Shown here: one piece after another, positions 1,636-59,269 of the stretch
Position numbering within the stretch: position 1 is the first letter of the stretch
Layout of the letters: each line of letters starts with the position of its first letter
Virus record (IMG/VR): IMGVR_UViG_3300032240_001991
Span: 62,001 to 126,000 of that record
Strand: one strand, 5' to 3'
Length of the DNA: 64,000 nucleotides
Made by a program: the position numbers and the translations under genes
The notes under the pieces: generated by a model
What the model was told of the DNA's origin: nothing
Databases searched by the model: none
What the model saw: only the letters and a program-made list of their open reading frames with translations

Positions 1636-1665
1636 ATTTTACCACTATTTAGACCAAAAAGTCAA
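1636..1665 (-). promoter_or_regulatory. sigma70-type promoter with an overlapping TAAATA late element
   Basis: Minus strand TTGACT-18 nt-TAAAAT, with TAAATA inside the spacer. Confidence 0.55.
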
Positions 1666-1769
1666 GAAACTGAGCAAATTTTGGTAAAAAATAATTTGGT
1701 TGACAGTGGGGAAGAGAGGCATAGTTAAAATGGTGCCAACCAGTTTCCCCTCAAACCTCACCTCAAACC

Positions 1770-1952
1770 TCACCCCAAATCCGTTTTATAGCGAATGTGT
1801 ACAGCAAAGTCATAGGCTGCTTCAGGATCCAAACCTTTGGCTACAGCCCATCCCAGAGTCAAACTAAACCAATCTTGTTCGCTGTCTGGGTCAATTGCTA
1901 GTGCTCTATCGGAGCATTCGGTTTTGAACAGTTCGATCAATTGTTCGTTCAT
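1770..1952 (-). CDS. Hypothetical early protein
   Basis: ORF overlapping its upstream neighbour by 4 bp (ATGA-type coupling). Confidence 0.7.
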   Translation of the reverse strand: MNEQLIELFKTECSDRALAIDPDSEQDWFSLTLGWAVAKGLDPEAAYDFAVHIRYKTDLG

Positions 1953-2188
1953 TGGTTGCCCTCGGCCATGTCGTTAATAGCGGCCGCTGTTTGGATTCCC
2001 ATTCTGTAGCCTTCTCGAAAGGCCCGTTCTGCCACTGCTCTCACAGTGGCTCTAATGTTAATGACCAAGTCATAGCCCGGGTCGCCGGGCTCATGTGTTA
2101 GAGGATTGGCCAACTCTAACTCGTTAAGATAACTGTCAGTTAAGCCTTGGCCAACAGCCTCTAGATCATATCCAATTTTGATAGGCAT
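1949..2188 (-). CDS. Hypothetical early protein
   Basis: Directly downstream of promoter 2214-2242, with GCAAGGA RBS. Confidence 0.75.
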   Translation of the reverse strand: MPIKIGYDLEAVGQGLTDSYLNELELANPLTHEPGDPGYDLVINIRATVRAVAERAFREGYRMGIQTAAAINDMAEGNQ

Positions 2189-2213
2189 TTTCTAGTCCTT
2201 GCTGTGTCTGTGT

Positions 2214-2242
2214 ATTATAAACAGGTTTTACCGGTCTGTCAA
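2214..2242 (-). promoter_or_regulatory. Early promoter, perfect sigma70 consensus, with GGTAAAACC spacer box
   Basis: Minus strand TTGACA-gaccGGTAAAACCtgtt(17 nt)-TATAAT. Confidence 0.9.
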
Positions 2243-2245
2243 CCC

Positions 2246-2539
2246 TCAGTATGGACATCCGATCATGCCCGTGTTGTAGCGGTCCTGCATGATCTGATAG
2301 AATTCCTCAACTGCCGCTGTAGGGCTAATCTGGCGATGGCGCGGGCTGGCTAGGCGTCCTGCAGCCTTGGCGCGACCATAGGCCTTGTTGAAGTTGTCGT
2401 GGTAACTGCAACGAGCTACCGCATAATCGATACCGTCGGCCTTTTCAATAAAGGCCACAGTGGCCCCGCCACGGCTTTCAAGGCGGCCGTGAATGTCGCG
2501 CTCACGATAGTGAACATACTTGATCTTGGGCGTAGTCAT
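2246..2539 (-). CDS. Hypothetical early protein
   Basis: AAGGAG RBS and own promoter at 2577-2604. Confidence 0.75.
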   Translation of the reverse strand: MTTPKIKYVHYRERDIHGRLESRGGATVAFIEKADGIDYAVARCSYHDNFNKAYGRAKAAGRLASPRHRQISPTAAVEEFYQIMQDRYNTGMIGCPY

Positions 2540-2646
2540 TGGTCGATCTCCTTACTGTGTGTCTCTGTCTGCTGCTATTATAGCAGGTTTTACCTAACTG
2601 TCAAGAGCTAGGTAGTTTTTTTACGAGAACTACCAAACTCAAACCC

Positions 2647-3594
2647 TTACTTGGTGTTCAGGAAGGGAATCGGAGCACCTGCGTAGATATTCTGCGGCAG
2701 TTGACCGTTCCACGTCTTGGCCTTCTGCATCTCGACCTCAATGCGACGCAGTTCCAGCACATCCTTGTTCTGGGCCAGTGCAGCGTTCTGCACACGGAGT
2801 GCTTCAGCCTGGGCCTTGGCCACAGTCAAGTTAGCATAGGCCTCACCATCAGCAGTGGCCTTGGCCGCAGCAGCCTCGGCTTCTGCGATAGCGACCTTCT
2901 GCTTCTGCTCAGCCTCAACGGTCTTGAGCTTGTTCTCAGCAGCCAGGCGCAACTGCTCCTGCTCAACCTTGCTGTTGATGGCTCGCATATAACTATCCTG
3001 GAAGGCAAAGTTACGCATATCGATATTGATCACCTGGGCCCCATAGATAGCCAACTTGGCCTGCAGCGTGCTCTTAATGTCAGCAGACACCTGAGCTCGT
3101 TGTGCAATCAAGTCGGGGGCGGTATACTTGGCAGTCACAGCCTTAAACGCTTCCTGCGTGGCAGTCTGAACGTAACTGCTCAAGTCGCCATTGTGGCTGT
3201 ACTTCTCGTAGACTTCAGCAACCTTGTCAGTGGCAATGCTGTAGCGTACAGTAAGGTCAACGTGTACGGGCTGCTGATCGCTGGTGCTACCATCGGCCTT
3301 GTCAATAGAAGCAGTCTCAGCACGAATGCTGAAAATGTTCAACTTCTGCCAGGGCGGAAGGATTGCCAGGCCCTCAGCCTCAATGCCCACGATCTTACCA
3401 AACTGGGTAATGACGCCGCGGCTACCGGTGGGTACCGAAGCAAATGGGTTGGCCCATGCCAAAACCAGCACGCCAGCCACCGCTGCGGCCACATGGGTAA
3501 CGATCTTAGGTACGTTGACGTTGACGTCAGTGACTTCTTCGCCCATGCGATTGGTACGAGTGTTCTTAGTGAAATAACTGTCTGAAAATGACAT
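2647..3594 (-). CDS. SPFH/band-7/prohibitin family membrane protein
   Basis: N-terminal TM helix, VPTGSRGVITQFG, D..V..DLTVRY, coiled-coil AEAEA region, C-terminal W.G.LP. Confidence 0.9.
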   Translation of the reverse strand: MSFSDSYFTKNTRTNRMGEEVTDVNVNVPKIVTHVAAAVAGVLVLAWANPFASVPTGSRGVITQFGKIVGIEAEGLAILPPWQKLNIFSIRAETASIDKADGSTSDQQPVHVDLTVRYSIATDKVAEVYEKYSHNGDLSSYVQTATQEAFKAVTAKYTAPDLIAQRAQVSADIKSTLQAKLAIYGAQVINIDMRNFAFQDSYMRAINSKVEQEQLRLAAENKLKTVEAEQKQKVAIAEAEAAAAKATADGEAYANLTVAKAQAEALRVQNAALAQNKDVLELRRIEVEMQKAKTWNGQLPQNIYAGAPIPFLNTK

Positions 3595-3606
3595 GATATC
3601 GACCTC

Positions 3607-3852
3607 TTACTGGTAAAGTTCGTTGAAACGACGCAGGTCCACCGACAGTTTGTCAGTGGGCAAGTGCTCAGTGACTTCAAATACTTCACTGGTGCTTGCG
3701 GTAGTAATCACTGCAGGAGTGACCTGTGCAGTCTGAGTGGGCTTAGAGTGAAAGAAATAGTAACCTAGCCCAAACACAGTCATGCCTAACAGGGCAATAC
3801 CTGCTACCTTATTAAACTTCTCAAAAGAATCTTCTTTGATCGTAAACTGCAT
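3607..3852 (-). CDS. Small single-TM membrane protein
   Basis: Hydrophobic VAGIALLGMTVFGLGYYFF; GAGGAG RBS; promoter 3882-3909. Confidence 0.75.
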   Translation of the reverse strand: MQFTIKEDSFEKFNKVAGIALLGMTVFGLGYYFFHSKPTQTAQVTPAVITTASTSEVFEVTEHLPTDKLSVDLRRFNELYQ

Positions 3853-3912
3853 ATTGTCTGCTCCTCTGTCTTTGTCTGTGTAGTATAGCAGGTTTTACCA
3901 AAAAGTCAACCT

Positions 3913-4107
3913 TTAGGCCTTATCGAGTACACGAACAACGAGTTCCGTGCTCTTTACAGATTTAACCCGTTCCCATTTCTCTAGGATGTCATTTTTAGAA
4001 AAAGAACACTTCTTCTTGCGCCACTCTAGAAACTCTCGTGCCTCAATCCAGTAGACCGTTGAATCATCAACAGGGTCATACTCTTCAACCAATCGAAACT
4101 TAGCCAT
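3913..4107 (-). CDS. Hypothetical early protein
   Basis: GCAAGGAG leader; promoter 4137-4165. Confidence 0.75.
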   Translation of the reverse strand: MAKFRLVEEYDPVDDSTVYWIEAREFLEWRKKKCSFSKNDILEKWERVKSVKSTELVVRVLDKA

Positions 4108-4161
4108 TTCTCTTGCTCCTTGCTGTGTGTGCGGGTATTATACTAAGGTTTCACCAAAAAG

Positions 4162-4605
4162 TCAAGCCAATTCTTTCTTTGCCGCCCGCTTGCGAGGCAC
4201 GCCCTTCTTAGTGTAACGAACCATTCGAGCGTAACGATGCTGCCCCATCAAGATCTGGATACGACCTTCGAACCCGTCCTTAATAGGAACGTTCCCAGTT
4301 TCAATTTTGAAGTTGTTCTTGTCAAACCACTGAAGCCACTCGTAAAGTTCGGCTTCGGCTTCCTCACCGCGGCTCAATACTGCCACGCAGGGATGCTTAT
4401 GGTAGGCGTTCTCCGGACACCAAATGGCGCCATTCTTATCTGCTCGTTCGTAGTCCTCGTCGTACCATGCATAGTCTGGATAATTACCATCAACTACAAT
4501 TCCCACACAATGCCGTCCGATGCCTACTTCACCTTCAAGAGCCAGTTGACAGTTATTCTTAGCGGCCCACACTGCCATCCAGGTGATCTTCTCTTCATGC
4601 TTCAT
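4162..4605 (-). CDS. Hypothetical early protein (start refined to MKHEEK)
   Basis: AAGGAG RBS before ATG 4605; its stop TGA lies inside the next -35 element. Confidence 0.7.
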   Translation of the reverse strand: MKHEEKITWMAVWAAKNNCQLALEGEVGIGRHCVGIVVDGNYPDYAWYDEDYERADKNGAIWCPENAYHKHPCVAVLSRGEEAEAELYEWLQWFDKNNFKIETGNVPIKDGFEGRIQILMGQHRYARMVRYTKKGVPRKRAAKKELA

Positions 4606-4663
4606 TTTTCGCTCCTTTACACACTTGGGTTTTTCACACCAAGGGTGACGACTGTGAATATCG

Positions 4664-4867
4664 TTATTTCCCATGGGCTAATGACTCTTGAATTTCATTA
4701 ACCCAGCAACTGATGTCGCTGCTGCCGATCTCTTCAAAATCGTAGAGATAAGCGGCCTTTTCGTCGATAGCGTCTAAAAGACGACTGCCATACTCAACTA
4801 GGAGATCTATATGCTGGGTGCGTATACGATAGATGATGCAATCTTTAACTGCTTGACTGCTGCTCAC
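4664..4867 (-). CDS. Hypothetical early protein
   Basis: GCAAGGAG leader; promoter 4897-4926. Confidence 0.7.
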   Translation of the reverse strand: MSSSQAVKDCIIYRIRTQHIDLLVEYGSRLLDAIDEKAAYLYDFEEIGSSDISCWVNEIQESLAHGK

Positions 4868-4922
4868 GGTCTACTCCTTGCTGTGTGTATGAGGCTATTA
4901 TACTATGGTTTTACCAGTACTG

Positions 4923-5513
4923 TCAACCACTATGAGTCTTGAGAACGTCAATCAGGCTCTTGCTTAGGTCCCAGTGGCCCTTCAAAACCGCTTCGCAGGC
5001 CAGCTGGGAGATTCGATCCAGGAATTCCGTTTCTGAGGTGTGCTCTTGCACCAGCACACCCAGTCCCTTGAGTCGAGCCACCAGCTCAGGGTACCCCTCA
5101 GGGTGTTTGACGTAGCAGCCTTGCACATCGTCGTAGGCACGAGGGTCCACCGGCAACTGCTGTGGGCCCTGACGCTCGCTCACCTCTTTGGCTTCACGGA
5201 GACCCAGGTTGGCCAGCTCTCGCAGGGCCTTGATTCCGCTGACCTTGCGATTGCCCCATTCGGTGGGCATGGTTACAGTCACTTTGCTAGGTATCATAAC
5301 AAATCCTTTCTGAGGGAGGCTTCTGCTCAAATTAATGGGCTGCTTCAGAGCGTTACGAGCAATGTCCCGTGCAGCAACCACATCCGCGCGGGCCCACTCG
5401 TTGATGTCCTCGGCATAGTAGATCTTGCGTTCAATCTCAGACAGACTGGTCCGCAGTCGCTGGATTTCGGCTTGCAACAGGTCTTGATCGCTCACGTCTA
5501 CTCCTGTAAACAA
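4923..5513 (-). CDS. Protein with a ribosomal L7/L12 C-terminal-domain-like motif (alternative start at 5297)
   Basis: KVSGIKALRELANLGLREAKEVSE resembles the bL12 CTD KI.VIK.VR..TGLGLKEAK..VE; second RBS GAAAGGA before ATG 5297. Confidence 0.6.
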   Translation of the reverse strand: MFTGVDVSDQDLLQAEIQRLRTSLSEIERKIYYAEDINEWARADVVAARDIARNALKQPINLSRSLPQKGFVMIPSKVTVTMPTEWGNRKVSGIKALRELANLGLREAKEVSERQGPQQLPVDPRAYDDVQGCYVKHPEGYPELVARLKGLGVLVQEHTSETEFLDRISQLACEAVLKGHWDLSKSLIDVLKTHSG

Positions 5514-5543
5514 TAGCCCAGGGTCACATAACCCTGGCGCTCT

Positions 5544-5726
5544 TTATTGTTCGTGTACTATAGCAGGTTTTACCACAGGCGTCAACTGATTTTTTGCCTT
5601 AGGGCCCTTGTACCCCGTGCCCTTCTGATAGATCAACCACACATGGTCAGAGCAGTAACTGCGGTTCTGATAGCCGGGGCGGCCACACTTGGCCTGCCCC
5701 TCATCACGCCATTCACACTTGGGCAC
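5544..5726 (-). CDS. Small Cys/His-containing hypothetical protein
   Basis: C-x10-C-x9-C-x2-H pattern; follows the ATPase gene directly. Confidence 0.6.
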   Translation of the reverse strand: MPKCEWRDEGQAKCGRPGYQNRSYCSDHVWLIYQKGTGYKGPKAKNQLTPVVKPAIVHEQ

Positions 5727-5727
5727 G

Positions 5728-6591
5728 TTACACCCCCTTCTTCATGCAGGTCGTCTTAGCCATACCCTTCCACGCAGCAGGGAAGCTCTTCTTGAGGTCT
5801 GCAATCTTGAGCACCATACGCAGGCTGAGCTCGCGCAGTTGAGTAGAGTTAGTAGCGATGTAATCCAAAATCTCTGCCTTCTCTGCTTCTTCAAACTCGT
5901 ATTTCTGCAACATCCCATCGCCTACAATCTGACGAATACGCAGGAGTTTTTCTCGGTCCGTATCCATCTGCAGGTCAATGTAGTGGCAGCGACTTTCAAG
6001 TGCCATCAAGTGACTACGCAGTTTCTTAGAACGTACATACTCAAATTTGATGTTGGTGATAAAGATCGCAGCACCACAGAACTCAAAGCGGTCTGGAATG
6101 CCTTCGCTACGCAAGAGTCGGCTGTCCAAGTTCCAGCTGATGTAGCGGCGCTCAGAACTGTCTAGCGCACCCTTAAGGATATTGAGGCTCAACTGGTCCA
6201 TGAGCACATCGTCGCAGTCGTCAAAGACCACTACGTTACCCTTATCAGCGAACCCAAACAGTTTAGCATAGAGACCCAGAGCACTCATAGCACCCTTGAC
6301 AATCTCATACTTAGGCTTACGCTGAGCCAAGGTATTGAACAGGTCGTCCTTCTGCAGAACAGCCTCAACACCAAAACTCTTGCCTACGCCGGGCGGCCCG
6401 CTGACAATCATAGCCCGCACATCCCCATGCTTGACAGCACGGGTCATGTCATCTAGAATCTGGAAACGAGAACGCAGGCGCTCAAGAATCTCATCGTCAG
6501 TTTCGGCCTGCACCTCTTGTGCGCGGCGTGCGATTGCTTCTTGGTCAAAGTCAATTACATTCTCAATCTTGGTAGTAGCGGTTCGAGCCAT
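5728..6591 (-). CDS. AAA+ family P-loop ATPase
   Basis: Walker A GPPGVGKS, Walker B VVVFDDCD, arginine-finger region ALESRC. Confidence 0.9.
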   Translation of the reverse strand: MARTATTKIENVIDFDQEAIARRAQEVQAETDDEILERLRSRFQILDDMTRAVKHGDVRAMIVSGPPGVGKSFGVEAVLQKDDLFNTLAQRKPKYEIVKGAMSALGLYAKLFGFADKGNVVVFDDCDDVLMDQLSLNILKGALDSSERRYISWNLDSRLLRSEGIPDRFEFCGAAIFITNIKFEYVRSKKLRSHLMALESRCHYIDLQMDTDREKLLRIRQIVGDGMLQKYEFEEAEKAEILDYIATNSTQLRELSLRMVLKIADLKKSFPAAWKGMAKTTCMKKGV

Positions 6592-6644
6592 TAGGTCACC
6601 TCTGTATATTTAAGACTGTATTATACTGAATTTTTGGTAAAAAG

Positions 6645-7004
6645 TCAATCCATGCGTGAGCCAACACTGGCATCAAGCCCCTGGCTTTTCAGTACCTTAG
6701 CGAACGCATCAGCATAGGCTTCTTTGAGCTCCATGCTCTGATTGCCCTCGTGAACCCAGTATTGCAGCCCCGGCTGGCTGTAACTCTTTTGGAATCCCTG
6801 CTCAGTCAAGCGGCGTCCTACCCGGCTGTTGCTACGGACCCCACGGATATTGACCCAAGCAAACCCACAAGGGCCTCCGGGTACCGTCCACCGATGCTGG
6901 CCGTCAGTGACCACCATGGGTTGAGGATTAGCAGCCTGAAGAGCAGCCATGCCCTGACGGTGCGCTTCTGCAAGAACTTCGTCGATATTCTGTTCAGTTA
7001 CCAT
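6645..7004 (-). CDS. Conserved phage hypothetical protein (start refined to MVTEQ)
   Basis: GCAAGGAG RBS before ATG 7004; promoter 7033-7061. Confidence 0.75.
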   Translation of the reverse strand: MVTEQNIDEVLAEAHRQGMAALQAANPQPMVVTDGQHRWTVPGGPCGFAWVNIRGVRSNSRVGRRLTEQGFQKSYSQPGLQYWVHEGNQSMELKEAYADAFAKVLKSQGLDASVGSRMD

Positions 7005-7047
7005 GTATATGCTCCTTGCTGTCAGTGTGCGTATACTAGCACAGGTT

Positions 7048-7359
7048 TTACCAGCCGTCAACCGGTCGCAGTCCGCTGATTACTCCTGCTTGGCTTAGTG
7101 TATCTTTTACACGGTTAAGGGCAGAACCACTATGGCCCCCAACGTGCCAGGCATAGAGACCCTTGGGAGTTTCGTCTTCCTTCCAATCGTAGATAGTGGC
7201 CACAGTACCATCTGCATACCGTAGTACCCACCCTACCGTAATCTTGTCCCCGCCCATAACATCCGGAGGACCAAATATCGCTACCAGTTGATCATAGGTA
7301 GCAGTAACGTATCCCACAAGGCTAGTGCCGGTGCCTTCGGCGTCTTTAGTAAACTTCAT
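7048..7359 (-). CDS. Conserved phage hypothetical protein
   Basis: GCAAGGAG RBS; promoter 7386-7414; ATIYDWK...W.VGG motif. Confidence 0.75.
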   Translation of the reverse strand: MKFTKDAEGTGTSLVGYVTATYDQLVAIFGPPDVMGGDKITVGWVLRYADGTVATIYDWKEDETPKGLYAWHVGGHSGSALNRVKDTLSQAGVISGLRPVDGW

Positions 7360-7410
7360 CTGGATCTCCTTGCTAGTGTTCGCGTACTATAGCACAGGTT
7401 TTACCAAAAG

Positions 7411-7623
7411 TCAAACTTCGTTGGCGTCTACATCCAGTTCTGTTTCGTCTTGGACATAGTCATAGGCCGAGGTCAATTCTTGATCAAAATCCCATTCACT
7501 TGTTTCTGCACAGTAGTGAATGATGTCTGCGATAAGATCTGCCGGACGAGTATAATTCTCGTTATTAAGGAACATCTGGGCCACTCGACCCACTGCCTGC
7601 TGGCGAAAAGTAAGATAGGTCAT
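7411..7623 (-). CDS. Hypothetical early protein
   Basis: GAGGAG RBS; acidic C-terminus. Confidence 0.7.
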   Translation of the reverse strand: MTYLTFRQQAVGRVAQMFLNNENYTRPADLIADIIHYCAETSEWDFDQELTSAYDYVQDETELDVDANEV

Positions 7624-7647
7624 TATCGCTCCTCAAGTCAAACGTAG

Positions 7648-7672
7648 GGGGGTGCAGTTGCCTACACCCCCC
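7648..7672 (-). terminator. GC-rich stem-loop, probable terminator
   Basis: GGGGGTG-cagttgccta-CACCCCC immediately after the stop at 7679. Confidence 0.5.
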
Positions 7673-7678
7673 AGTGGA

Positions 7679-7882
7679 TTAGCCCACCAGCGCGTTGTTA
7701 CGCACGGTGTTGCTAACGCGGCCGTACAGCCCATCGGCCGCCTTCTCCGAGATCTCCTTGCGGAGACCGCCCGACGCCGTTCCGTTGCCGCTCAACATAC
7801 GCGCCACAGCACGGATGCTGCGGAACTTGTAGGTCAGGCCCGAGTTCGGAAAGGTCACATCGATCGTTACATTGCGCTTCAT
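7679..7882 (-). CDS. Small basic hypothetical protein
   Basis: AAGGAGAG RBS; promoter 7926-7954. Confidence 0.7.
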   Translation of the reverse strand: MKRNVTIDVTFPNSGLTYKFRSIRAVARMLSGNGTASGGLRKEISEKAADGLYGRVSNTVRNNALVG

Positions 7883-7969
7883 TTCAACTCTCCTTAAGTT
7901 ACTAGCACCTTGCTAGTATGTCGTTACTATAACACCGTCTAATGACTGTGTCAACCTTTTTTTACCAAA

Positions 7970-8614
7970 TCAGTGAGCGTAGTAGCCCACGTTCTCAACA
8001 CTCTCATCCCAACAGGCACGGCACGAGCCGCACTCATTGTCCTGGAAACGGCTTGGGCAATCATACCCATGCGCTTCGCTGTTCTTGTGCACGGTGCTGG
8101 TGTGCGTCCACCCCTTGGGCGGCTCAGCATCAATCATCTGTGCACTCATACGAATTACAAGGTTCTTAGGCCGAGTATACTGCCTTAGGAACTCTCGCAC
8201 AATACCAAACTCACGGGTAGGCAACCAATGGTCGATCCAGGGCGTCAATTCAGCCACGCGAGCAATCATCATAAGATGCTTCACGCTCTGCAGGTCCCCA
8301 CTGTCGTGCCAGCGAAAGTATTCTTCATTCTGCATCAATTTGACCATTGCACTGACCCACGAGTCCTCTGTAAGAGTGTCGTGTAGGGCTTCTACGAGCG
8401 TCGTGTAGCGGCGATCGTGAGCGGCCACTGTGCTCTTCCAAGTGTAAGCACCTTTGAGTGCGTAGCACTTAAAGCAGACGCTGCCCTCAACCAATCGTAG
8501 TTTGCTGCCAGTATGACATTTCTTAGCACTGAAGCCAAAACTCTTGCCTGGCATCTTAGAAGGCTCACTCAATCCTCCTACGAACTCTCCTGCTGCTGCC
8601 TTGGTCTTGAACAT
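7970..8614 (-). CDS. Gp88-like protein (Cys-rich)
   Basis: C..GSKL....SVC..CYA, FRWHDSGD, WLPTRE, C-terminal C.SC.ACW; typical of the mycobacteriophage gp88 family. Confidence 0.75.
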   Translation of the reverse strand: MFKTKAAAGEFVGGLSEPSKMPGKSFGFSAKKCHTGSKLRLVEGSVCFKCYALKGAYTWKSTVAAHDRRYTTLVEALHDTLTEDSWVSAMVKLMQNEEYFRWHDSGDLQSVKHLMMIARVAELTPWIDHWLPTREFGIVREFLRQYTRPKNLVIRMSAQMIDAEPPKGWTHTSTVHKNSEAHGYDCPSRFQDNECGSCRACWDESVENVGYYAH

Positions 8615-8671
8615 TTCTGCTCCTTGCTAGTGTTCGTGTACTATAACACAGGTTTTACCAAAGGTCAACCA

Positions 8672-8857
8672 CTAACTATTCCAAGGAACGGTTCTCACGG
8701 TAACGCCGTCCCTGTCTGTTTCATAGAGGCCGGCTTCGTGTATGATGTATTGATCTTGAAAATGATCAAACTCTAGATCTGCACGATCCTTGGCCTCCTC
8801 TTCGGTACAGTCCGGAAGATCTACTTCTACTTGGATACGCATCATGTACTTAGGCAT
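8672..8857 (-). CDS. Hypothetical early protein
   Basis: Small acidic ORF in the early cassette. Confidence 0.6.
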   Translation of the reverse strand: MPKYMMRIQVEVDLPDCTEEEAKDRADLEFDHFQDQYIIHEAGLYETDRDGVTVRTVPWNS

Positions 8858-8941
8858 TAGAACCCCTCAGGAAGATAGCCCGTAAGCCGCTCTATCGCTT
8901 CAACTAACGAAAACCCCATCTCTTTACGCATATTATTCTCC

Positions 8942-9295
8942 TTAATCAGAACTGTCAACATCGTTGATCTGACCGCAATGAACACACTCATAGCGATTGT
9001 AGCAACGTCCAAGATTCATCGTCCGCACCCACTCATGCCCAGAGCACTTCGCAGCAATGGCCTCAGTCACATAGCCATGTCCGTAGCAGTGACTACACGC
9101 ACAGGTGAAGTGTCTGTAGCGATGCCGATTCTCTGGAGTGTCAGGTCTACCGTGTAGACTGTAGGAGTTGAGACTGAGATTCCAACCACCATACCCACGA
9201 CACTTTGGGCACTCTACGATGTAATCATACAGAGGTTCCTTGCGCGAGAAGTCCACGAAGGCATCTGGATGATCTGGCGTAAGAAAGTCTGACAT
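8942..9295 (-). CDS. Zn-finger protein with DnaJ-type CxxCxGxG repeats
   Basis: CPKCRGYGG and CSHCYGHG plus CVHCG; GCAAGGAG RBS; promoter 9325-9352. Confidence 0.75.
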   Translation of the reverse strand: MSDFLTPDHPDAFVDFSRKEPLYDYIVECPKCRGYGGWNLSLNSYSLHGRPDTPENRHRYRHFTCACSHCYGHGYVTEAIAAKCSGHEWVRTMNLGRCYNRYECVHCGQINDVDSSD

Positions 9296-9348
9296 ATGTT
9301 ACTCCTTGCTCTAACTATGCGACTATTATAGCAGGTTTTACCAAAAAG

Positions 9349-9972
9349 TCAACCTTCGTATTCACCTTCTGGATCAATCCCATGTTTATTGAGATCGATC
9401 TCTAAATTCTCTTCATCATCCCCGTCCTCATCTTCATACTCTGCCTGCTCGCGTTCGTACTCTTCAATCTGCTCGGAGATACAGAAACGTTCGTCCAGTT
9501 CAGTAATCTGTTCACGGACCTGGTCAGCAGTCCATCCGCTATAGTCTACGGAATTATCTCCTTCACTGTTAGTAAAGGTTCCTGCAAATTGCATACCTTG
9601 TTCATGATAGTAGGCTTCAACTTCAAAGCCCTGCTTTACCATATACTCAAAGAAAGCAATAGGTGGCCCCCATGCACTGTCAAAGAAGAGTTCGATGAGA
9701 TCAACTTCTTCATTGATGATGCGGGCGTCAACATCCCACTTGATTCCCCAGTTCTTGCATTGCCAACTATACCAGTCTGGAGCACCGTACTTCTCAATGA
9801 ACTCAGTGGCTCGCTGCCCTTCCCATTCGGGCGAACAATATTCATGCAACTCTGCAGGGCAAGGCAAGAACTCGTTGAATAATCGGTCGGCCTTGACGCC
9901 AGTCTTGACTCGCAAGATCATAGCCGGGTCCTTGTGGGTAAAGGTCACGTGATTCGCGCACCAATTTGGCAT
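9349..9972 (-). CDS. DUF1281/YubB-like ferredoxin-fold protein
   Basis: MPNWCAN, DWYSWQCKNWGIKWD, FDSAWGPP, YYHEQG motifs. Confidence 0.85.
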   Translation of the reverse strand: MPNWCANHVTFTHKDPAMILRVKTGVKADRLFNEFLPCPAELHEYCSPEWEGQRATEFIEKYGAPDWYSWQCKNWGIKWDVDARIINEEVDLIELFFDSAWGPPIAFFEYMVKQGFEVEAYYHEQGMQFAGTFTNSEGDNSVDYSGWTADQVREQITELDERFCISEQIEEYEREQAEYEDEDGDDEENLEIDLNKHGIDPEGEYEG

Positions 9973-10025
9973 TTAAAATTCCTCTTGTTAGTGTCTGTGT
10001 ACTATAGCAGAGGTTTTACCAATTG

Positions 10026-10211
10026 TCAACCTCTCATTAGGTCAAAGATGCTTCGTTGTAGATCTGCCAGTTCATCATGCGGAACATAAAAGTCTGTTCT
10101 AGGATCCCAGTACTCGCCCTCTTTGGGATCATAGTACAAGACCCTGCCGTTGGGATACTGGAAGGGGCCTTCCAACCCCTTCCTGGGCCCATAGTCTTTA
10201 GAGAGGGCCAT
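10026..10211 (-). CDS. Conserved phage hypothetical protein (start refined to MALSK)
   Basis: GLEGPF.YPNGRVLYYDPKEGEYWDP.TD motif. Confidence 0.7.
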   Translation of the reverse strand: MALSKDYGPRKGLEGPFQYPNGRVLYYDPKEGEYWDPRTDFYVPHDELADLQRSIFDLMRG

Positions 10212-10362
10212 TGACGCGCCGGTCAAGTGCGGCACCCCAACCAGCAAAGGCTACCACCCATGCAATAGAAGCACTAGAGTCACCCAAATACCAGTTGATA
10301 AGAAAAAGAATCAGCGTTGATGCCACTAGGCCAAATTCAAGAAAAGTAAGATACCGTTTCAT
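10198..10362 (-). CDS. 54-aa two-TM membrane protein (not in the ORF track)
   Basis: Manual translation MKRYLTFLEFGLVASTLILFLINWYLGDSSASIAWVVAFAGWGAALDRRVNGPL; AAGGAG RBS. Confidence 0.6.
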   Translation of the reverse strand: MKRYLTFLEFGLVASTLILFLINWYLGDSSASIAWVVAFAGWGAALDRRVNGPL

Positions 10363-10448
10363 AAGAACTCCTTAAGAATGGCAGTTTTTTCTGTAGTGCT
10401 GCCAACTGCGGTCTATACTTATATAGCGCCTGTCCTCGCGCTTCCGGA

Positions 10449-10781
10449 TTAGGCTGCGTCGCGCAGGCGATAAATCACGCCCGTCGCAGTCTCCACAATG
10501 TCAACATCGCTGTTGGCAGCGTACCAGTCAAAGTTACGGACCTTGGTGCTGTCACGCTCCCAGTCGGTAGGACCTTCAACCTTGACCGCAAGCCACTTCT
10601 TGCGGATGTTGAAGAACACGCGACGTCCTGGGTAGACTTCGCGAACACGTTCAGCAAAGTGTTCACCGCCCTTGATGTAAGAGTCGGGCCAAAGCCGGCG
10701 GTTCTCGCGGCTCTTGTTGACGGCGTCCACGTAGGCGCCCACGCGATCAGATGCAAACCAGTTTTCAGTACGCTTGAACAT
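10449..10781 (-). CDS. Hypothetical early protein
   Basis: AAGGAG RBS; promoter 10821-10849. Confidence 0.75.
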   Translation of the reverse strand: MFKRTENWFASDRVGAYVDAVNKSRENRRLWPDSYIKGGEHFAERVREVYPGRRVFFNIRKKWLAVKVEGPTDWERDSTKVRNFDWYAANSDVDIVETATGVIYRLRDAA

Positions 10782-10857
10782 TTTTCGCTCCTTTTGCTAG
10801 CACCTTGCTAGCGTGCCAATACTATAACAAAGGTTTTACCAACTGTCAACCATTAAA

Positions 10858-11190
10858 AAAATGCATTCTCCCTGCTGGCGGTATTTTCCATTCACCACAA
10901 ACAATTATGTGGTATCCGCTGCCCAACACAGGGAGACTGTCGTGCTGCTAACGCCCGTTTGGTTTGACGGCAGTATTGCTACTGGAGACCATTGACCACT
11001 CACCTTGCGGTGGATAGGCTGTTCTCAAACCACCCGTAGATGTCACTCTACTTCTATCGTGCGGGTCACACTAGCCGCTAACTAGGCGGCGTGTTCAGTA
11101 AAGATTGGTTGGAAAGATTCGTCAAAATCTATCTTCGCCAGTTGACGCTGACCGCCCAAACCTGGGCGCCAATCTTAAATCGTTTAACTT
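10858..11190 (-). ncRNA. Candidate large structured ncRNA A (about 330 nt), family not recognised
   Basis: No ORF of 60 aa or more in 10782-11234; own promoter 11197-11225; at least eight helices including two GCAA tetraloop hairpins; ends in a U-tract. Confidence 0.65.
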
Positions 11191-11234
11191 GGGTCTAGCA
11201 TAACAATTTTACCAAACCCTGTCAACCAAATTGT

Positions 11235-11480
11235 TTACTCTTCTACCGCAATGACAGAATCCTTGCGGAAACTGCGCCATCCGGCCTTTTCCACATCCCA
11301 AACGCTGACCACATCGGGATTAGGAACTCGAGCCTGCCCCGTGCCAGTGCTGGGCGGCAAACGGCTTTCCTGCAGAGTGCAACGAAGATTCCGTACTGTG
11401 CCATCGCTCTTAGTAAAGCGAACAGTACGCTCACCCAAACGTAGGTCATTCAGCAACTGATCAAAATTGATCTTAGTCAT
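11235..11480 (-). CDS. DUF2693/WYL_2-like SH3 beta-barrel protein
   Basis: V.FTKSDGTVRNLRCTL...VWDVEKAGWRSFR motif; AAGGAG RBS; promoter 11505-11533. Confidence 0.75.
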   Translation of the reverse strand: MTKINFDQLLNDLRLGERTVRFTKSDGTVRNLRCTLQESRLPPSTGTGQARVPNPDVVSVWDVEKAGWRSFRKDSVIAVEE

Positions 11481-11539
11481 ATAGATACTCCTTATTGAGC
11501 CGCCACTATAGCATCAAGAGGGCCTGCTGTCAATTTCTT

Positions 11540-11875
11540 CTTAATTGGGAGTGGGGGTGGACCCCATGTGGTTCCTGAGCAGGTGTCTGTTGACGCGCCC
11601 AGACAAGATTCTGCTCATATATAAGAGTGTGGAGCCGCTGGCTATGGGTGTACCGCGGCTCCCTCCACGACTTTCTGGGATCGAAATCCGCCCTAGACCT
11701 CTGATGTGGGTAGTCGTCTCAGCATTATCGCACCCGGTACACAAGATCTTCCTAATCTTCCGCCGGACTGTTATCCAGCCCGCAACTATGTTGACCAGTT
11801 AGGTCCGGACCTACCCTAGCGATTATCAGCATCCTAGGTCAGCTTTGGACTTCACTTTCTGCTTGGAGTTTTAAC
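11540..11875 (-). ncRNA. Candidate large structured ncRNA B (about 335 nt), family not recognised
   Basis: Starts just after TAAATA (11881-11886); nine or more helices, a UUCG loop, a 7-8 bp pseudoknot; only RBS-less shadow ORFs overlap it. Confidence 0.6.
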
Positions 11876-11892
11876 AAAAGTATTTAACCAGT

Positions 11893-11976
11893 TGGTGCGA
11901 GTGGAGGGATTCGAACCCTCAAGCCGTTGGGCGGCAGATTTTAAGTCTGCTGTGTATACCGTTCCACCACACTCGC
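11893..11976 (-). tRNA. trnL: tRNA-Leu(UAA)
   Basis: GCGAGTG acceptor, anticodon arm GCAGA-CTTAAAA-TCTGC, long variable arm, GGTTCGAATCC T-arm, encoded CCA. Confidence 0.97.
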
Positions 11977-12012
11977 ATATCATACAGTAATTATATATTC
12001 TAAATCTAAATA

Positions 12013-12142
12013 GTCCTAGCCTCGGTTTACTATTCTCTTGCTACCTGATGCAGATGCTTACAGCATCATTTACTAGTATCACAGGCTACCCGCTTCGAAC
12101 AAGGTTAGGTTTGTACTCAACCCGACGAGCCGAGGCTAGGAC
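12013..12142 (-). ncRNA. Candidate 130-nt RNA with 13-bp paired ends inside the tRNA operon
   Basis: GTCCTAGCCTCGG (12013-12025) is the exact reverse complement of CCGAGGCTAGGAC (12130-12142); internal GATGCT-tac-AGCATC hairpin. Confidence 0.6.
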
Positions 12143-12147
12143 ATAAT

Positions 12148-12223
12148 TGGTGGGCCCTCAGGGATTCGAACCCTGAACCAAAGGATTATGAGTCCTCTGC
12201 TCTAACCGTTGAGCTAAAGGCCC
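12148..12223 (-). tRNA. trnI: tRNA with CAU anticodon, probably tRNA-Ile2 (lysidine type) rather than Met
   Basis: 76 nt, GGGCCTT/GAGGCCC-like acceptor ending GGGCCCACCA, anticodon arm GAGGA-CTCATAA-TCCTT, encoded CCA; lacks the initiator GGG/CCC anticodon stem and 1:72 mismatch. Confidence 0.9.
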
Positions 12224-12243
12224 GTGTATATTATTACAGCGGG

Positions 12244-12251
12244 GTATTTAT
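12244..12251 (-). promoter_or_regulatory. T4-type late promoter TATAAATA driving the tRNA/ncRNA cluster
   Basis: Exact TATAAATA on the minus strand about 20 nt upstream of the tRNA(CAU) 5' end. Confidence 0.7.
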
Positions 12252-12253
12252 AA

Positions 12254-12394
12254 TTAACACTCCGTAAGATAGTGATATTCACGCCCTGGAAATTGTGCTT
12301 CGATTAGCCTCTTAGCATCCCAATAGTCTCGAGCCTGCAGCTCATAATCAACTGATCTTCCGTCTATCATCAGTGTACAACGATACCTACGCAT
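12254..12394 (-). CDS. 46-aa hypothetical protein (not in the ORF track)
   Basis: MRRYRCTLMIDGRSVDYELQARDYWDAKRLIEAQFPGREYHYLTEC; promoter TTGACA-17-TATACT at 12426-12454; GAGAG RBS. Confidence 0.65.
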   Translation of the reverse strand: MRRYRCTLMIDGRSVDYELQARDYWDAKRLIEAQFPGREYHYLTEC

Positions 12395-12485
12395 ATATGT
12401 ACTCTCTATCTGTTAGTGTCTGCATAGTATAGGGTCAGATCAGTAAGTTGTCAACAGTGGCCTAAATATATACAGCGGGGTATTA

Positions 12486-18429: not shown

Positions 18430-20391
18430 TTATCCGAATATGATATCTAAACTGTTAGTAAATGTATTATAAAATTGATATACTGCGCTAACATTAGTGT
18501 TTGAATTAACAAATCCCATTCTTCCAGCTGTGTAGATATTACCACCGACCCCTGCTCCTCCAGCTACCTGCAGAGCGCCGGTATTGGTTGACAGAGAATT
18601 TGTAACGTTGGTAATTGTAAAAATACCAGTATAAGGAGATATCGGGCCACTCGATCCTGAACCGGACGATCCAATGTATCCTGCTGGACCAAGTGGGCCA
18701 AGTGAACCTGATGGGCCAATACCTTGGCTACCAATATAACCTATCGGACCTAGTGGACCTAACGGACCTAGTGGACCTAGATTGCCTTGACTACCAATAT
18801 AACCAATTGGACCCAACGGACCCAACGGACCTAACGGACCCAACGGACCTAACGGACCTAGTGTACCAATACTACCGGCGTATCCTCGAGATCCAGTATA
18901 ACCTGCTGGTCCAGGTTTATCGAAAAATAATGCGTAATTGCGCCCATCAGTAAGATATTCGTTTGGATTGTTAGTGGGCGAAGATAACCAACCACCACCT
19001 AGTGCAATAGTTGTCCCAGTAGTATAAGTTCCATTTGTTGACACAGTATAATAATAACTACTGTACACCAAAGTTGGGTTAGCTTCGTCGATAACATATA
19101 ATATTCCTGGTATAGTACTACTGTATGACAGCAGTGTTTGGCCTACATTTTCACCAAATCTATTATAATCTTTGTTTACATTGATGTTACCAATAATACT
19201 GTTATCATCAAAATCTAAATTAAATTGTCCCGAAGGTGGTGGCGGTAGACCAATACCATTAGTATAGTTCATGCCTTGGAACGTATAGCGTAAACCAGTT
19301 GGCAGCGCGCCCATTGATCCAGTATAACCTGTACTACCAGTATATCCACGCGAACCAATAAAGCCCTGTGGGCCTAATGGGCCAAGTGGCCCGAGATTAC
19401 CAAAACTACCTATGTATCCTATAGGGCCTTGAGGACCTAGTGGGCCAAGTGGACCTAAATTGCCTTGACTACCTACGTAGCCTATAGGACCTTGTGGACC
19501 CTGTGGGCCTTGAGGACCTAGTGGGCCTAACGGACCTAAGTTACCTTGACTGCCTACGTAACCTATTGGACCTTGTGGACCTATTGGGCCTTGTGGACCA
19601 AGTGGACCTAACGGACCTAAATTGCCTTGACTACCTACGTAGCCTATAGGACCTTGTGGACCTATCGGGCCTTGAGGACCTAACGGACCTAACGGACCTA
19701 AGTTACCTTGACTACCTACGTAGCCTATCGGGCCCTGAGGACCTAGTGGACCAAGTGGACCTAAGTTACCTTGACTACCTGCGTAACCTATTGGACCTTG
19801 TGGACCTTGTGGACCTATCGGGCCTTGTGGACCAAGTGGACCTAACGGACCTAAGTTACCTTGACTACCTACGTAGCCTATCGGGCCCTGAGGACCTAGT
19901 GGACCAAGTGGACCTAAGTTACCTTGACTACCTGCGTAACCTATTGGGCCCTGCGGACCCAAAGGACCTAATGGACCTAAGTTGCCTTGACTACCCGCAT
20001 AACCAATTGGGCCCTGCGAACCTTGAAGCCCTCGGCTACCTACATAACCAATTGATCCAGTGTACCCGCCGCCGCCCCCTCCTCCGCCAGCACTGCCGGT
20101 ATATCCGTATCCTACTTCGATTCCATTAACTATTAATGTTCCGCTGAGATTCGTAACAGTTCCCAAAACTTGTAAATTTTGTTTAATCAATACGTTGGAA
20201 TTAAATGTGCTAGAATTAATAACCACTAACGATGGGGTAGTAAACACTCCCATCGAATCCAACGTAGCATTATAAGACCCATTAATTAATTGACTGACTG
20301 GGATATTATTAGGATCCCACTTGACGCCGTCAAAAATATATCCTGCATACGTTGTACCAGTTGAGGGATTAGTTGGAAAATTTAATGCCAT
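18430..20391 (-). CDS. Collagen-like (Gly-X-Y) fibre protein
   Basis: Two long G-X-Y tracts ([21 protein letters not shown] units); N-terminal [12 protein letters not shown]...YIFDGVKW module. Confidence 0.9.
19360..20045 (-). repeat. Coding tandem repeats of collagen units
   Basis: Degenerate 9-nt GGACCTAAC/GGACCTTGT units and longer repeats such as GGACCTAAGTTACCTTGACTACCTACGTAGCCTAT; differences fall mainly at third codon positions. Confidence 0.9.
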
Positions 20392-59263: not shown

Positions 59264-59269
59264 TTTTTT

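Follow-up and report, generated by a model that had tools for sequence, protein, structure and literature searches.

A family of structured non-coding RNAs, apparently undescribed, associated with the tRNA arrays of uncultivated phages

The ORF-free gap examined here encodes a real, intricately folded non-coding RNA that belongs to a large family for which no description could be found. The family occurs almost only inside the tRNA gene clusters of uncultivated phages, with 136 of 164 copies lying within 1 kb of a tRNA, and it probably takes part in the way in which phages handle tRNAs or translation. The gap lies in a 64,000-nucleotide stretch of viral DNA (IMG/VR record IMGVR_UViG_3300032240_001991, positions 62,001 to 126,000), hereafter the window, in which all positions are numbered. 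The conserved RNA is a 235-nt core on the minus strand at 10862-11096, and not the whole 330 nt that had been proposed in the first-pass annotation of this DNA.

Results

Sequence features of the gap

The observation made in the first-pass annotation is confirmed, given that the gap, the promoter, the complementary segments and the U-run listed there are all present in the sequence at the positions assigned to them. Positions 10782-11234 contain stop codons of all three kinds in all six frames, and none of the ten longest stop-to-stop pieces (29-55 aa) matches Pfam. The gap has its own predicted sigma-70-type promoter carrying the region's GGTAAAA spacer box, here as TTGGTAAAA, a partial copy of the GGTAAAACC box that is found in 12 of the 18 minus-strand promoters aligned from positions 1-12.5 kb of the window. 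Unlike most of those promoters, this one is not followed by the conserved leader, Shine-Dalgarno sequence and ATG. The simple terminator scan did not call the U7 run, and its role as a terminator is inferred. The coordinates of the features are collected in Table 1.

Table 1. Features of the RNA locus and of its surroundings in the window, all on the minus strand
Positions	Feature	Sequence or composition	Observations
11893-12223	tRNA genes upstream of the RNA	tRNA-Met(CAU) 12148-12223; tRNA-Leu(UAA) 11893-11976	Called by ARAGORN and Rfam; same strand as the RNA, about 0.7 kb upstream
11197-11225	Predicted sigma-70-type promoter	TTGACA, 17 nt, TATGCT; spacer box TTGGTAAAA	Consensus scan; inferred transcription start near 11190
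11101-11176	Window-specific 5' leader	8-bp stem AAGATTGG/CCAATCTT enclosing three hairpins; cloverleaf-like four-way junction	Followed by U + ACU and then GAAC
10862-11096	Conserved core of the family	From GAAC at the 5' end to GCA at the 3' end	nhmmer and covariance model
11074-11090	H1 hairpin	GCCGC / loop CUAGUUA / GCGGC	All 5 pairs with double changes; loop GUU 11082-11080 kisses the H2 loop
11059-11071	H1b hairpin	GUGUG / loop ACC / CGCAC	99.6% paired; first pair G-C 56, C-G 54; third pair G-C 77, C-G 28, A-U 9
11036-11051	H2 hairpin	GUAGA / loop GUGACA / UCUAC	All 5 pairs with double changes; loop GAC 11044-11042 pairs with the H1 loop
11029-11035	Linker, proposed docking strand for the ACC loops of H1b and H3	GGGUGGU	Invariant in 115 of 115 sequences; pairing inferred
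10971-11026	Subgroup-specific insertion domain	Stem a 11026-11021/10990-10985; GCAA hairpin b 11013-11000; GCAA hairpin c 10984-10971	17 of 23 pairs with compensatory changes in 7 members
10955-10970	H3 hairpin	CCGU / loop CAAACCAA / ACGG	Loop carries the invariant ACC
10941-10953	H4 hairpin	CGU / 7-nt loop UAGCAGC / ACG	100% paired; closing pair C-G 101, U-A 14; family consensus loop UGGCAAU
10867-10936	3' domain closed by H5	H5 UCUCCCUG 10936-10929 / CAGGGAGA 10874-10867; H6 GCGG 10919-10916 / CCGC 10881-10878; variable hairpin H7 ACCACA 10913-10908 / UGUGGU 10899-10894	H5, all 6 counted pairs with double changes; H6 middle pair C-G 80, U-A 21, A-U 12; H7, 3 of 4 base pairs with double changes
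10855-10861	U7 run, likely 3' end of the transcript	U7	Five nucleotides after H5
10821-10849	Next box promoter, for the 110-aa gene	TTGACA, 17 nt, TATAGT	Downstream boundary of the RNA unit

Homologues and comparative structure

Folding of the single sequence is not convincing by itself, with z = -1.33 for the 341 nt and z = -0.87 for the core. It is the comparative data that make the structure far more than chance. A search with nhmmer using the window sequence alone found about 50 homologues, down to E=6e-20. Two conserved motifs retrieved at least 177 loci carrying homologues, nearly all of them on uncultivated viral (IMG/VR) contigs, which range from a few kb up to 357 kb. All 113 new viral loci obtained with the second, independent motif are members, while a separate set of 8 loci that shares the 15-mer proved to be a different non-coding element. 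A covariance model of the 5' domain (R1), built from 90 other sequences without the window, hits 10938-11096(-) over model positions 1-104 at 65.6 bits (E=6e-17, where the E-value is rough because of a shortened calibration) and hits nothing else in the window, in which no paralogue was found.

On an alignment of 115 sequences, the eight helices are 93.8% paired, against 35-47% when the 3' partners are slid. Of the 39 pairs, 28 show double changes, and 795 cells of the alignment carry double changes against 249 in shuffles. The top 14 pairs by mutual information are all helix pairs. The loops of H1 and H2 are joined by a kissing contact, which is 83% paired against 14-55% in controls. Its variants are AUCA/UGAU, GUCA/UGAC, GUCAC/GUGAC and, in a subgroup, AACG opposite CGUU, with one position being G-C in 56 sequences and A-U in 41. 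In the window, GUU opposite GAC gives G-C, U-A and U.G. About 40 positions are invariant and 45 nearly so. The 3' domain of the window, with its H5, H6 (GNGG/CCNC) and H7 helices and its ...AAUGCA end, conforms to the family and shows compensatory differences against the copies at L055 and L324 (numbers preceded by L denote retrieved loci). L151, L157, L290 and L324 share the H7 type of the window. As read from the alignments, most members, but neither the window's copy nor the short-H7 members, have a consensus K-turn in H7, made of a 3-nt bulge, tandem G.A pairs and a U.U pair.

RNAalifold first paired GGUGGU with ACCNCC. This pairing was rejected because the N of ACCNCC covaries perfectly with the N of GNGG (C-G, U-A, A-U), which is H6. 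For the proposed docking of the two invariant ACC loops on the linker the evidence is at the level of motifs only, given that covariation cannot test invariant bases. In the divergent variants L290 and L300 the linker changes, the H1b loop changes (ACG, ACA) and the H3 loop loses ACC, while L062 and L064 keep one GGU and one ACC loop. These variants cover few lineages and are imperfect, since L300 pairs only 2 of 3.

Comparison with the proposed helices

By the overall count six of the helices proposed in the first-pass annotation are confirmed, and those that can be named one by one are GCCGC/GCGGC (H1), TCTCCCTG/CAGGGAGA (H5), ACCACA/TGTGGT (H7) and the two GCAA hairpins. The latter are confirmed in the subgroup that carries the insertion, where RNAalifold on 7 insertion-bearing members shows that the stems change while the GNRA loops stay; in L324, hairpin b is CAUUC-GCGA-GAAUG. 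The proposed GGTTTGA/TCAAACC helix is complementary in the window but is not supported, because TCAAACC is mostly the conserved loop of H3, which replaces it, and the closest relatives have UCUAACC, which gives an uncompensated U.U. Helices H1b, H2, H3, H4 and H6 and the loop-loop contact had been missed.

The two remaining helices, AAGATTGG/CCAATCTT and CGCCCA/TGGGCG, lie in the 5' leader, which folds well on its own (MFE equal to centroid, -28.7 kcal/mol, z = -3.43, 0 of 200 shuffles as good). Nonetheless, this leader is absent from the closest relatives (L324-L326), and neither it nor the two other ORF-poor stretches near the tRNAs has a homologue in the loci retrieved, so that comparison neither supports nor refutes these helices. 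The leader is not called a tRNA by ARAGORN or by RF00005 at E<=10. Its 8-bp closing stem and non-canonical loops make it tRNA-like only in topology and position, although the spacing to GAAC is the same as that of tRNA-N-CCA-GAACG in canonical members. The reading of the leader as a degenerate tRNA is an inference.

The conserved unit of the family measures about 195-260 nt. The extra 95 nt at the 5' end, the private promoter and the U-run set the window apart from its closest relatives, which have none of them. In L324-L326 and in L296, the locus of the 328-kb sister contig, the U-run is missing and the RNA abuts the next promoter. L296 ends inside the RNA, and a second motif search did not find its contig.

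Genomic context

Members sit in phage tRNA arrays, and every tRNA within 1 kb of the 136 copies is on the same strand as the RNA, with a median of 10 tRNAs within 5 kb. In 68 of 137 copies a tRNA ends 3 nt or less before the start of the RNA, in 39 of 137 a tRNA starts 10 nt or less after its end, and the RNA is flush with tRNAs on one or both sides in 77 of 137. The association is looser in the window, where tRNA-Leu and tRNA-Met lie 0.7-1.0 kb upstream with one gene and two promoters in between. The RNA is also not flush with tRNAs in L062 and L118, and in L324-L326 it directly follows a protein gene. The GC content of the RNA is 0.53, against 0.41 for the surrounding loci.

No protein neighbour is conserved. 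All-against-all clustering of 2,961 neighbouring ORFs gave a commonest cluster present in 28 of about 168 loci, and the clusters had miscellaneous Pfam hits (RNase H-like, MazG, D-Ala-D-Ala carboxypeptidase and others). WYL_2 is not linked to the RNA, given that none of the 51 other loci of this protein, which is common in phages, has the RNA and only about 12 RNA loci have a WYL_2 gene. The 110-aa protein encoded next to the RNA has only four relatives, and their contigs either lack the RNA just upstream (L057, L058) or are cut inside it (L055).

Searches for known families

None of the 4227 models of Rfam 15 matches the RNA. The whole window at gathering thresholds gave only two tRNAs and a tmRNA elsewhere, positions 10700-11350 at E<=10 gave only a chance 18-nt hit inside the neighbouring gene, and the canonical member L063 at E<=10 gave only chance hits or hits to the upstream tRNA. 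A blastn search in distant mode of 50,697 GenBank phage records with the window region and with L063 found nothing relevant. Among 185,579 species-representative bacterial and archaeal genomes there were 32 pattern hits, with about 34 estimated to be expected by chance, and none is a member. Literature searches found no description of this RNA, although an unnamed entry for the motif may already be present in one of the large automatic catalogues of candidate viral RNA structures (for example PMC10690425).

Discussion

It is clear that the locus carries a structured non-coding RNA read from the minus strand, and that this RNA belongs to a large phage-only family, so that the proposal of a new phage RNA class stands as far as these searches can tell. 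The interpretation given in the first-pass annotation is nonetheless supported only in part. The absence of a match to RNase P, SRP, 6S and group I/II introns holds, and the comparison with GOLLD and ROOL fits in one respect that had not been known when it was made, namely the residence in phage tRNA islands (PMC12286853). In contrast, the length and one helix needed correction, early expression rests only on the sigma-70-type promoter and is a guess, and action as a decoy against host defence is a conjecture, one possibility among several.

The five consecutive hairpins (H1, H1b, H2, H3, H4), the three-helix 3' domain (H5, H6, H7) and the kissing contact are shown by covariation, while the ACC docking, the way in which the RNA is made, its binding partner and its function are inferred from sequence and context alone. 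In most phages the RNA would be transcribed within a tRNA array and, lying flush between tRNAs, would be cut out by the tRNA-processing enzymes of the host as a discrete stable RNA, although such excision is not universal given the copies that are not flush with tRNAs. In the window it would have become an independent unit, with the host sigma-70 RNA polymerase starting at the box promoter, reading through a cloverleaf-like leader that occupies the place of the upstream tRNA, and stopping at the U7 run after H5.

In this view the RNA would act in trans. Its loops and junctions are nearly invariant across phages whose neighbouring genes differ, and no phage protein gene travels with it, which makes a conserved host component of the tRNA or translation machinery the most likely partner. 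This could be tRNA (for example its CCA end or elbow), a tRNA-processing or tRNA-modifying enzyme, a tRNA-targeting defence nuclease, or the ribosome, and the effect would be to protect, tune or exploit the tRNA supply of the phage itself. This reading is tentative and falls somewhat short of even confidence. The partner is inferred from context and from the absence of a linked protein gene within about 6 kb, and a protein encoded elsewhere in these large genomes is not excluded. In addition, the second UGG-containing junction (GUGGAAG), present in most members, is missing from the subtype of the window and cannot be essential to a universal mechanism.

Among the alternatives, two are considered equally possible but unlikely. 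The RNA may assemble, as GOLLD and ROOL do, into an RNA-only homo-oligomer whose architecture carries the function, for example by enclosing or scaffolding tRNAs or ribosomal parts. This would be in line with the shared genomic niche, the lack of a conserved neighbouring protein and several invariant loop sequences (ACC twice, UGGCAAU) with no intramolecular partner shown by covariation, but the RNA is three to four times smaller than ROOL or GOLLD, neither Rfam model hits it, no conserved self-complementary loop was found, and the 5' GAACGUUC palindrome is present in only part of the family. It may instead be the subunit or scaffold of a ribonucleoprotein whose protein is encoded by the host or elsewhere in the phage genome, with the K-turn as the putative protein-binding site. 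The loci retrieved cover only about 7 kb or less on each side in genomes of up to 357 kb, so that distant genes could not be seen; however, no protein family is enriched next to the RNA, and the K-turn, being missing from the window and from the short-H7 members, cannot be the universal binding site.

A cis-acting role in polycistronic tRNA transcripts, as a structured spacer that directs or orders processing, blocks exonucleases or insulates neighbouring tRNAs with no role once excised, is less likely still. It agrees with the copies that are flush with tRNAs and on their strand, but a spacer would not need so many invariant positions, a kissing loop and eight covarying helices, and the RNA also occurs as a stand-alone unit with its own promoter and terminator-like end in the window and in L062, with its own promoter-like sequence in L118, and directly after a protein gene in L324-L326. 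A new ribozyme, for example a tRNA-processing or self-cleaving RNA, is doubtful. The core is compact, pseudoknotted and highly conserved, it has invariant unpaired nucleotides and lies in tRNA arrays, and its GGU motifs recall the way in which RNase P RNA and T-box RNAs hold the CCA end, but no RNase P or self-cleaving ribozyme model of Rfam hits it at E<=10, there is no P4-like long-range helix with the RNase P signature, and the two ends do not pair. A degraded protein gene, a recoded one that is read through its stops, or small ORFs, is essentially refuted. Spurious ORFs overlapping the RNA do cluster across some loci (at most 26 of about 168, on either strand), but stops of all three kinds interrupt every frame, the pieces have no Pfam match, no Shine-Dalgarno sequence or ATG follows the promoter, and the changes between relatives are compensatory base-pair changes and indels that are not multiples of three, not codon-like substitutions.

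Widespread, complex and unexplained classes of structured RNA are rare, and several have led to new biochemistry. The niche shared with GOLLD and ROOL, whose functions are still unknown, points to a general, RNA-based layer of phage control over tRNAs or translation. At about 200 nt, this RNA is far easier than GOLLD or ROOL for structure determination, binding assays and genetics, which makes the question of what tRNA-island RNAs do more directly testable, and the family explains a recurrent "empty" stretch in the annotation of phage tRNA arrays. A bolder possibility, which is unlikely but not excluded, is that this is a third, much smaller class of tRNA-island phage RNAs after GOLLD and ROOL, with a biochemical activity of its own, in which the RNA would grip the CCA end or elbow of tRNAs through its invariant GGU, ACC and UGGCAAU elements. 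It would thereby either shield phage tRNAs from host tRNA-targeting defences as a decoy or sponge, or catalyse or chaperone a step of tRNA maturation, without any dedicated protein.

GOLLD (RF01998) and ROOL (RF03087) are structured RNAs of unknown function that are encoded by phages and prophages, often near tRNA islands, with no known protein partner (PMC12286853). The present family has the same niche, which is a shared context and not a shared ancestry, but it shows no sequence or structure match to them, its core of 195-260 nt compares with about 580 nt and more than 800 nt, and it was not found in the bacterial genomes searched or in prophages, whereas GOLLD and ROOL are. The stable RNAs species 1 and species 2 (rnaC, rnaD) of phage T4 are likewise small stable RNAs of unknown function encoded inside a phage tRNA cluster and released by the tRNA-processing machinery. 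They are shorter, at about 120-140 nt, and the blastn search of the GenBank phage records, a collection presumed to include T4, revealed no similarity. Bacterial Y RNAs (YrlA), which act with Rsr/Ro60, are non-coding RNAs with tRNA-like features that are sometimes phage-encoded and close to tRNA genes. No Rfam hit to them was obtained, none of the ten commonest neighbouring protein clusters scanned against Pfam is an Rsr/TROVE protein, and the termini of the present RNA do not pair into a Ro-binding stem.

Bacterial RNase P RNA (RF00010, RF00011 and relatives) works on tRNA precursors and uses a GGU motif to hold the CCA end, and the present RNA has in common with it a genomic association with tRNA genes. 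It is, however, about half the size, and its consensus contains no AGGAAAGUCC-type or ACAGAA...GGCUUA-type element. With the T-box riboswitch (RF00230), which it does not hit, the RNA has in common the tRNA context, a K-turn in most members and the string GGGUGGU(A), identical to the start of the T-box sequence whose UGGN bases pair with the tRNA NCCA end. It is flanked by tRNAs or promoters and is not the 5' leader of an aminoacyl-tRNA synthetase or amino-acid gene, it has no terminator/antiterminator switch and no Stem I with a specifier loop, and covariation shows that its ACCNCC segment pairs with GNGG in H6 and not in a T-box-like antiterminator.

Genomic setting of the RNA

The window belongs to the 326,658-bp uncultivated viral contig IMGVR_UViG_3300032240_001991, which encodes phage-type functions, namely collagen-repeat proteins that are probably fibres, DNA ligase, ribonucleotide reductase, a very large glycosyltransferase, two tRNAs, and a permuted tmRNA. 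The tmRNA gene is complete, is of the two-piece betaproteobacterial type and has the tag peptide ANDDVYAMELAA, which hints at a betaproteobacterial host. The first 12.4 kb of the window has 50% G+C against about 39% for the rest, with a sharp break between the two, and all of its genes are on the minus strand. Given that relatives of this block occur on separate short contigs (L055 and L057 in our numbering of the collected loci), it may be a mobile or fast-evolving host-takeover module.

A consensus scan of this block finds 40 promoter-like sites against 16.8 expected, with about 18 strong sigma-70-type sites on the minus strand. Twelve of those 18 share a GGTAAAACC box in the spacer, which is a small inverted repeat (GGT-N3-ACC) that could be an operator for a phage regulator. 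Most of the promoters are followed within 20-35 nt by a conserved leader, a Shine-Dalgarno sequence and an ATG, and many share the mRNA leader ACACGAACACTAGCAAGGAG.

The gap under study has TAG, TGA and TAA stops in all six frames, and the ten longest stop-to-stop pieces have no Pfam match, while the other apparent gaps of this region are filled by 60-80-aa ORFs. The gap has its own predicted promoter with a TTGGTAAAA box in the spacer, after which neither a Shine-Dalgarno sequence nor an ATG is found, and a U7 run precedes the next promoter. The first-pass annotation had proposed a structured RNA of about 330 nt here, and its observation holds, with all the complementary segments that it listed being present in the sequence at the stated coordinates. 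Nonetheless, folding energy alone would not have been convincing, given that the z-score is -1.33 for the whole unit and -0.87 for the conserved core, and only the 5' leader stands out, with a z-score of -3.43.

Coordinates of the features discussed in the text (window positions unless a locus number is given)
Feature	Position	Strand	Remarks
Promoter-dense block	1-12400	minus	50% G+C; 12400-64000 is about 39%
Region with the box promoters	1636-12454	minus	examples at 10849-10821, 10029-10001, 8668-8640 and 7414-7386
ORF-free gap	10782-11234
Predicted promoter of the RNA	11225-11197		TTGACA-17-TATGCT
Match to covariance model R1	10938-11096	minus	65.6 bits, E=6e-17
U7 run	10855-10861
Next promoter	10849-10821	minus
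WYL_2 gene just upstream of the RNA	11235-11480	minus	81 aa, Sm-like SH3 barrel
Stretch after tRNA-Leu	11540-11892	minus	about 350 nt
Spacer between tRNA-Met and tRNA-Leu	11977-12147	minus	171 nt
Collagen-triple-helix-repeat protein, probably a fibre	18430-20391	minus
Collagen-triple-helix-repeat protein, probably a fibre	21987-23177	minus
Protein with three glycosyltransferase domains	38380-42441	plus	1,353 aa
Permuted tmRNA	59234-59629	plus
Divergent subtype of the RNA family	L290:7836-8047
Divergent subtype of the RNA family	L300:6071-6258
Divergent subtype of the RNA family	L062:6805-6908
Divergent subtype of the RNA family	L064:3663-3766
Different conserved non-coding element	L074:3570-4120	minus	about 300 nt

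Identification of homologues

A search of Rfam 15 gave no match to the RNA, either at gathering thresholds or at E<=10, and GenBank phages gave none. The flanking 110-aa protein has four relatives at about 70% identity, and the contig of one of these, L055, begins inside a homologue of the RNA. This homologue shares a long identical stretch with the window and has a closing helix with two compensatory changes, where UCUCCCUG/CAGGGAGA becomes CCCCUUG/CAAGGGG.

The viral collection was then searched with two motifs. A 15-mer from the shared stretch gave 76 loci, of which 50 are true homologues by nhmmer. A second, independent motif (GGGTGGT, a gap of 12-42 nt, then CGYTGGCAATRCGA) gave at least 120 stretches, and all 113 new loci obtained with it are members. 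The same second motif in 185,579 species-representative bacterial and archaeal genomes gave 32 hits, against about 34 that we estimate to be expected by chance, and none of the 32 is a member. A canonical member of the family likewise finds nothing in GenBank phages or in Rfam.

At least 177 loci carry the RNA, on contigs that range from a few kb to 357 kb, and 137 copies are full-length and 114 are distinct. Pairwise identity over core columns runs from 49% to 100% with a median of 73%, and the copy in the window is among the most divergent, with a median of 60%. The RNA has 53% G+C in loci that average 41%.

Conserved structure

The structure was derived from an alignment of 115 sequences. 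From 5' to 3', the core reads GAACGU, helix H1, UA, helix H1b (a 5-bp stem with an ACC triloop), GAUGAGAAGU, helix H2 with loop GUGAYA, GGGUGGU, helix H3 whose loop contains AACC, helix H4 with loop UGGCAAU, the 5' strand of H5, the 5' strand of H6 (GNGG), the variable H7, UAUAAUUA, the 3' strand of H6 (CCNC), the 3' strand of H5, and AGAGCA. The 39 pairs are standard in 93.8% of cells, against 35-47% when the 3' partners are slid by 1-3 columns, and 28 pairs show changes on both sides. A total of 795 cells carry a double change, against 249 +/- 13 in shuffles, and an alignment of 31 sequences gave the same picture. The 14 column pairs with the highest mutual information are all pairs of these helices.

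The same scan revealed a tertiary contact between the loops of H1 and H2, with RUC opposite GAY. It appears as G-C in 56 sequences and A-U in 41, longer variants exist (AUCA/UGAU, GUCAC/GUGAC), and one subgroup has both loops rewritten to AACG/CGUU. The contact is 83% paired against 14-55% for slid controls. Most members also have a consensus K-turn in H7, read from the alignment and consisting of a 3-nt bulge, tandem G.A pairs and a U.U pair, which the window and the members with a short H7 do not have.

The GGGUGGU linker and the ACC of the H1b and H3 loops are invariant and, therefore, covariation cannot reveal whether they pair. Suggestive evidence comes from divergent subtypes in which these elements are replaced together, and which represent natural mutants for the proposed contacts. 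Loci L290 and L300 lose GGGUGGU, and in the same sequences the H1b loop changes to ACG (opposite a new CGU) or ACA and the H3 loop loses ACC, while loci L062 and L064 keep one GGU and one ACC loop. This supports loop-to-linker docking but does not prove it.

The copy in the window

A covariance model of the 5' domain, R1, built from 90 sequences that excluded the window, matches the 5' domain of the copy in the window end to end and nothing else in the 64 kb. The window has all eight helices and the kissing loop. It also has a 56-nt insertion between GGGUGGU and H3, which it shares with a subgroup of loci (L059, L090, L101, L118, L130, L324). For seven such sequences, RNAalifold finds a stem, two GNRA-capped hairpins and H3, with 17 of 23 pairs compensatory, and these hairpins are the two GCAA hairpins of the first-pass annotation. 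By contrast, its helix GGTTTGA/TCAAACC is not supported, given that TCAAACC is largely the conserved loop of H3 and that the closest relatives read UCUAACC, which leaves an uncompensated U.U. At most GGUU/AACC could pair, which is the proposed contact between linker and loop.

The closest relatives are L324-L326, from lake metagenomes, and L296, from a 328-kb sister contig, which differ from the window by compensatory changes in H1, H1b, H2, H5 and one of the insertion hairpins (hairpin b). They lack the 95-nt 5' leader, the private promoter and the U-run of the window, and in them the RNA starts right after a stop codon and is followed directly by the next box promoter. The predicted transcription unit of the window is therefore a local invention around a conserved core. 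The leader folds into a four-way junction with an 8-bp closing stem and ends exactly where a tRNA ends in canonical members, with the junction reading stem-U-ACU-GAAC where canonical members read stem-N-CCA-GAACG. We read it as a degenerate tRNA-like handle, which is an inference, given that neither ARAGORN nor the Rfam tRNA model calls it a tRNA.

Association with tRNA genes

ARAGORN finds 1,901 tRNAs in the 168 loci analysed. Of 164 RNA copies, 136 have a tRNA within 1 kb, and every nearest tRNA is on the strand of the RNA (110 of 110 upstream, 113 of 113 downstream), with a median of 10 tRNAs within 5 kb. In 68 of 137 full-length copies a tRNA ends 3 nt or less before the first G of GAACG, in 39 of 137 a tRNA begins 10 nt or less after the terminal AGAGCA, and 34 copies have tRNAs on both sides within 30 nt. 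Other members have their own promoter-like sequence (L062 and L118), and L062 also has a terminator-like end.

No neighbouring protein family is common, with the best occurring in 28 of about 168 loci and the Pfam assignments being miscellaneous. The WYL_2 gene next to the RNA of the window encodes a type of protein that is common in phage contigs (53 loci found) but is not linked to the RNA family.

Possible function and relation to known RNAs

The analysis shows that this is a conserved, intricately folded, non-coding RNA, that it is specific to uncultivated phage contigs in the collections searched, and that it is embedded in tRNA arrays and co-oriented with them. What follows on its production and function is inferred. 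The RNA would be released as a discrete stable RNA by tRNA processing, while in the window it would be made from its own promoter, with the tRNA-like leader perhaps serving the same purpose. It would act in trans and contact a conserved host component of the tRNA or translation apparatus rather than a dedicated phage protein, given that its single-stranded elements are nearly invariant across phages with different neighbouring genes and that no protein gene travels with it. Repeated GGU, ACC and UGG elements are how RNase P RNA, T-box RNAs and rRNA hold the CCA end, although here they may simply build the fold of the RNA itself.

This general account is tentative, and we consider it somewhat less likely than not to be correct as a whole. 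Each of four other explanations is given a smaller weight, namely an RNA-only oligomer like GOLLD or ROOL, a ribonucleoprotein with a distant gene, a purely cis-acting processing element, and a ribozyme. The interpretation of the first-pass annotation is supported only in part, since a structured phage RNA class is found but early expression and a decoy role against host defence remain guesses. The RNA is not a one-off 330-nt transcript of one jumbo phage but one member of a large, well-defined and apparently undescribed RNA class of phage tRNA islands.

The RNA does not qualify as a member of any Rfam family. By context, the nearest analogues are GOLLD and ROOL, described as phage and prophage RNAs often near tRNA islands with unknown function (PMC12286853). 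The two stable RNAs of the T4 tRNA cluster are also close in context. No homology to any of these was found in the searches of Rfam and of GenBank phages. The resemblances to T-box and RNase P RNAs are limited to short motifs, and the defining features of both families are absent. No description of this RNA was found in the literature searched, although an anonymous prior listing cannot be excluded, given that a catalogue of about 8,500 unnamed candidate structures from IMG/VR exists (PMC10690425).

Other non-coding elements

The spacer between tRNA-Met and tRNA-Leu in the window is closed by a 13-bp helix (GUCCUAGCCUCGG/CCGAGGCUAGGAC) and contains a GUAA-capped hairpin (z = -2.0). It has no Rfam hit and no homologue in the collected loci, and may be another array-embedded RNA. 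The stretch that follows tRNA-Leu holds only a weak TTG ORF, is G+C-rich and folds into many hairpins (z = -1.45), again with no Rfam hit and no homologue in the collected loci, and is a possible further ncRNA.

A different conserved non-coding element occurs in other viral contigs (L074, and also L070, L081, L082, L086, L104, L121 and L123). It has stops in all frames, no Rfam hit, and is not hit by model R1. This element shares the GUGUG-ACC-CGCAC hairpin followed by GA, and carries a stretch (AAGUACCGUAAGGGAAAUG) that resembles a conserved 23S rRNA segment.
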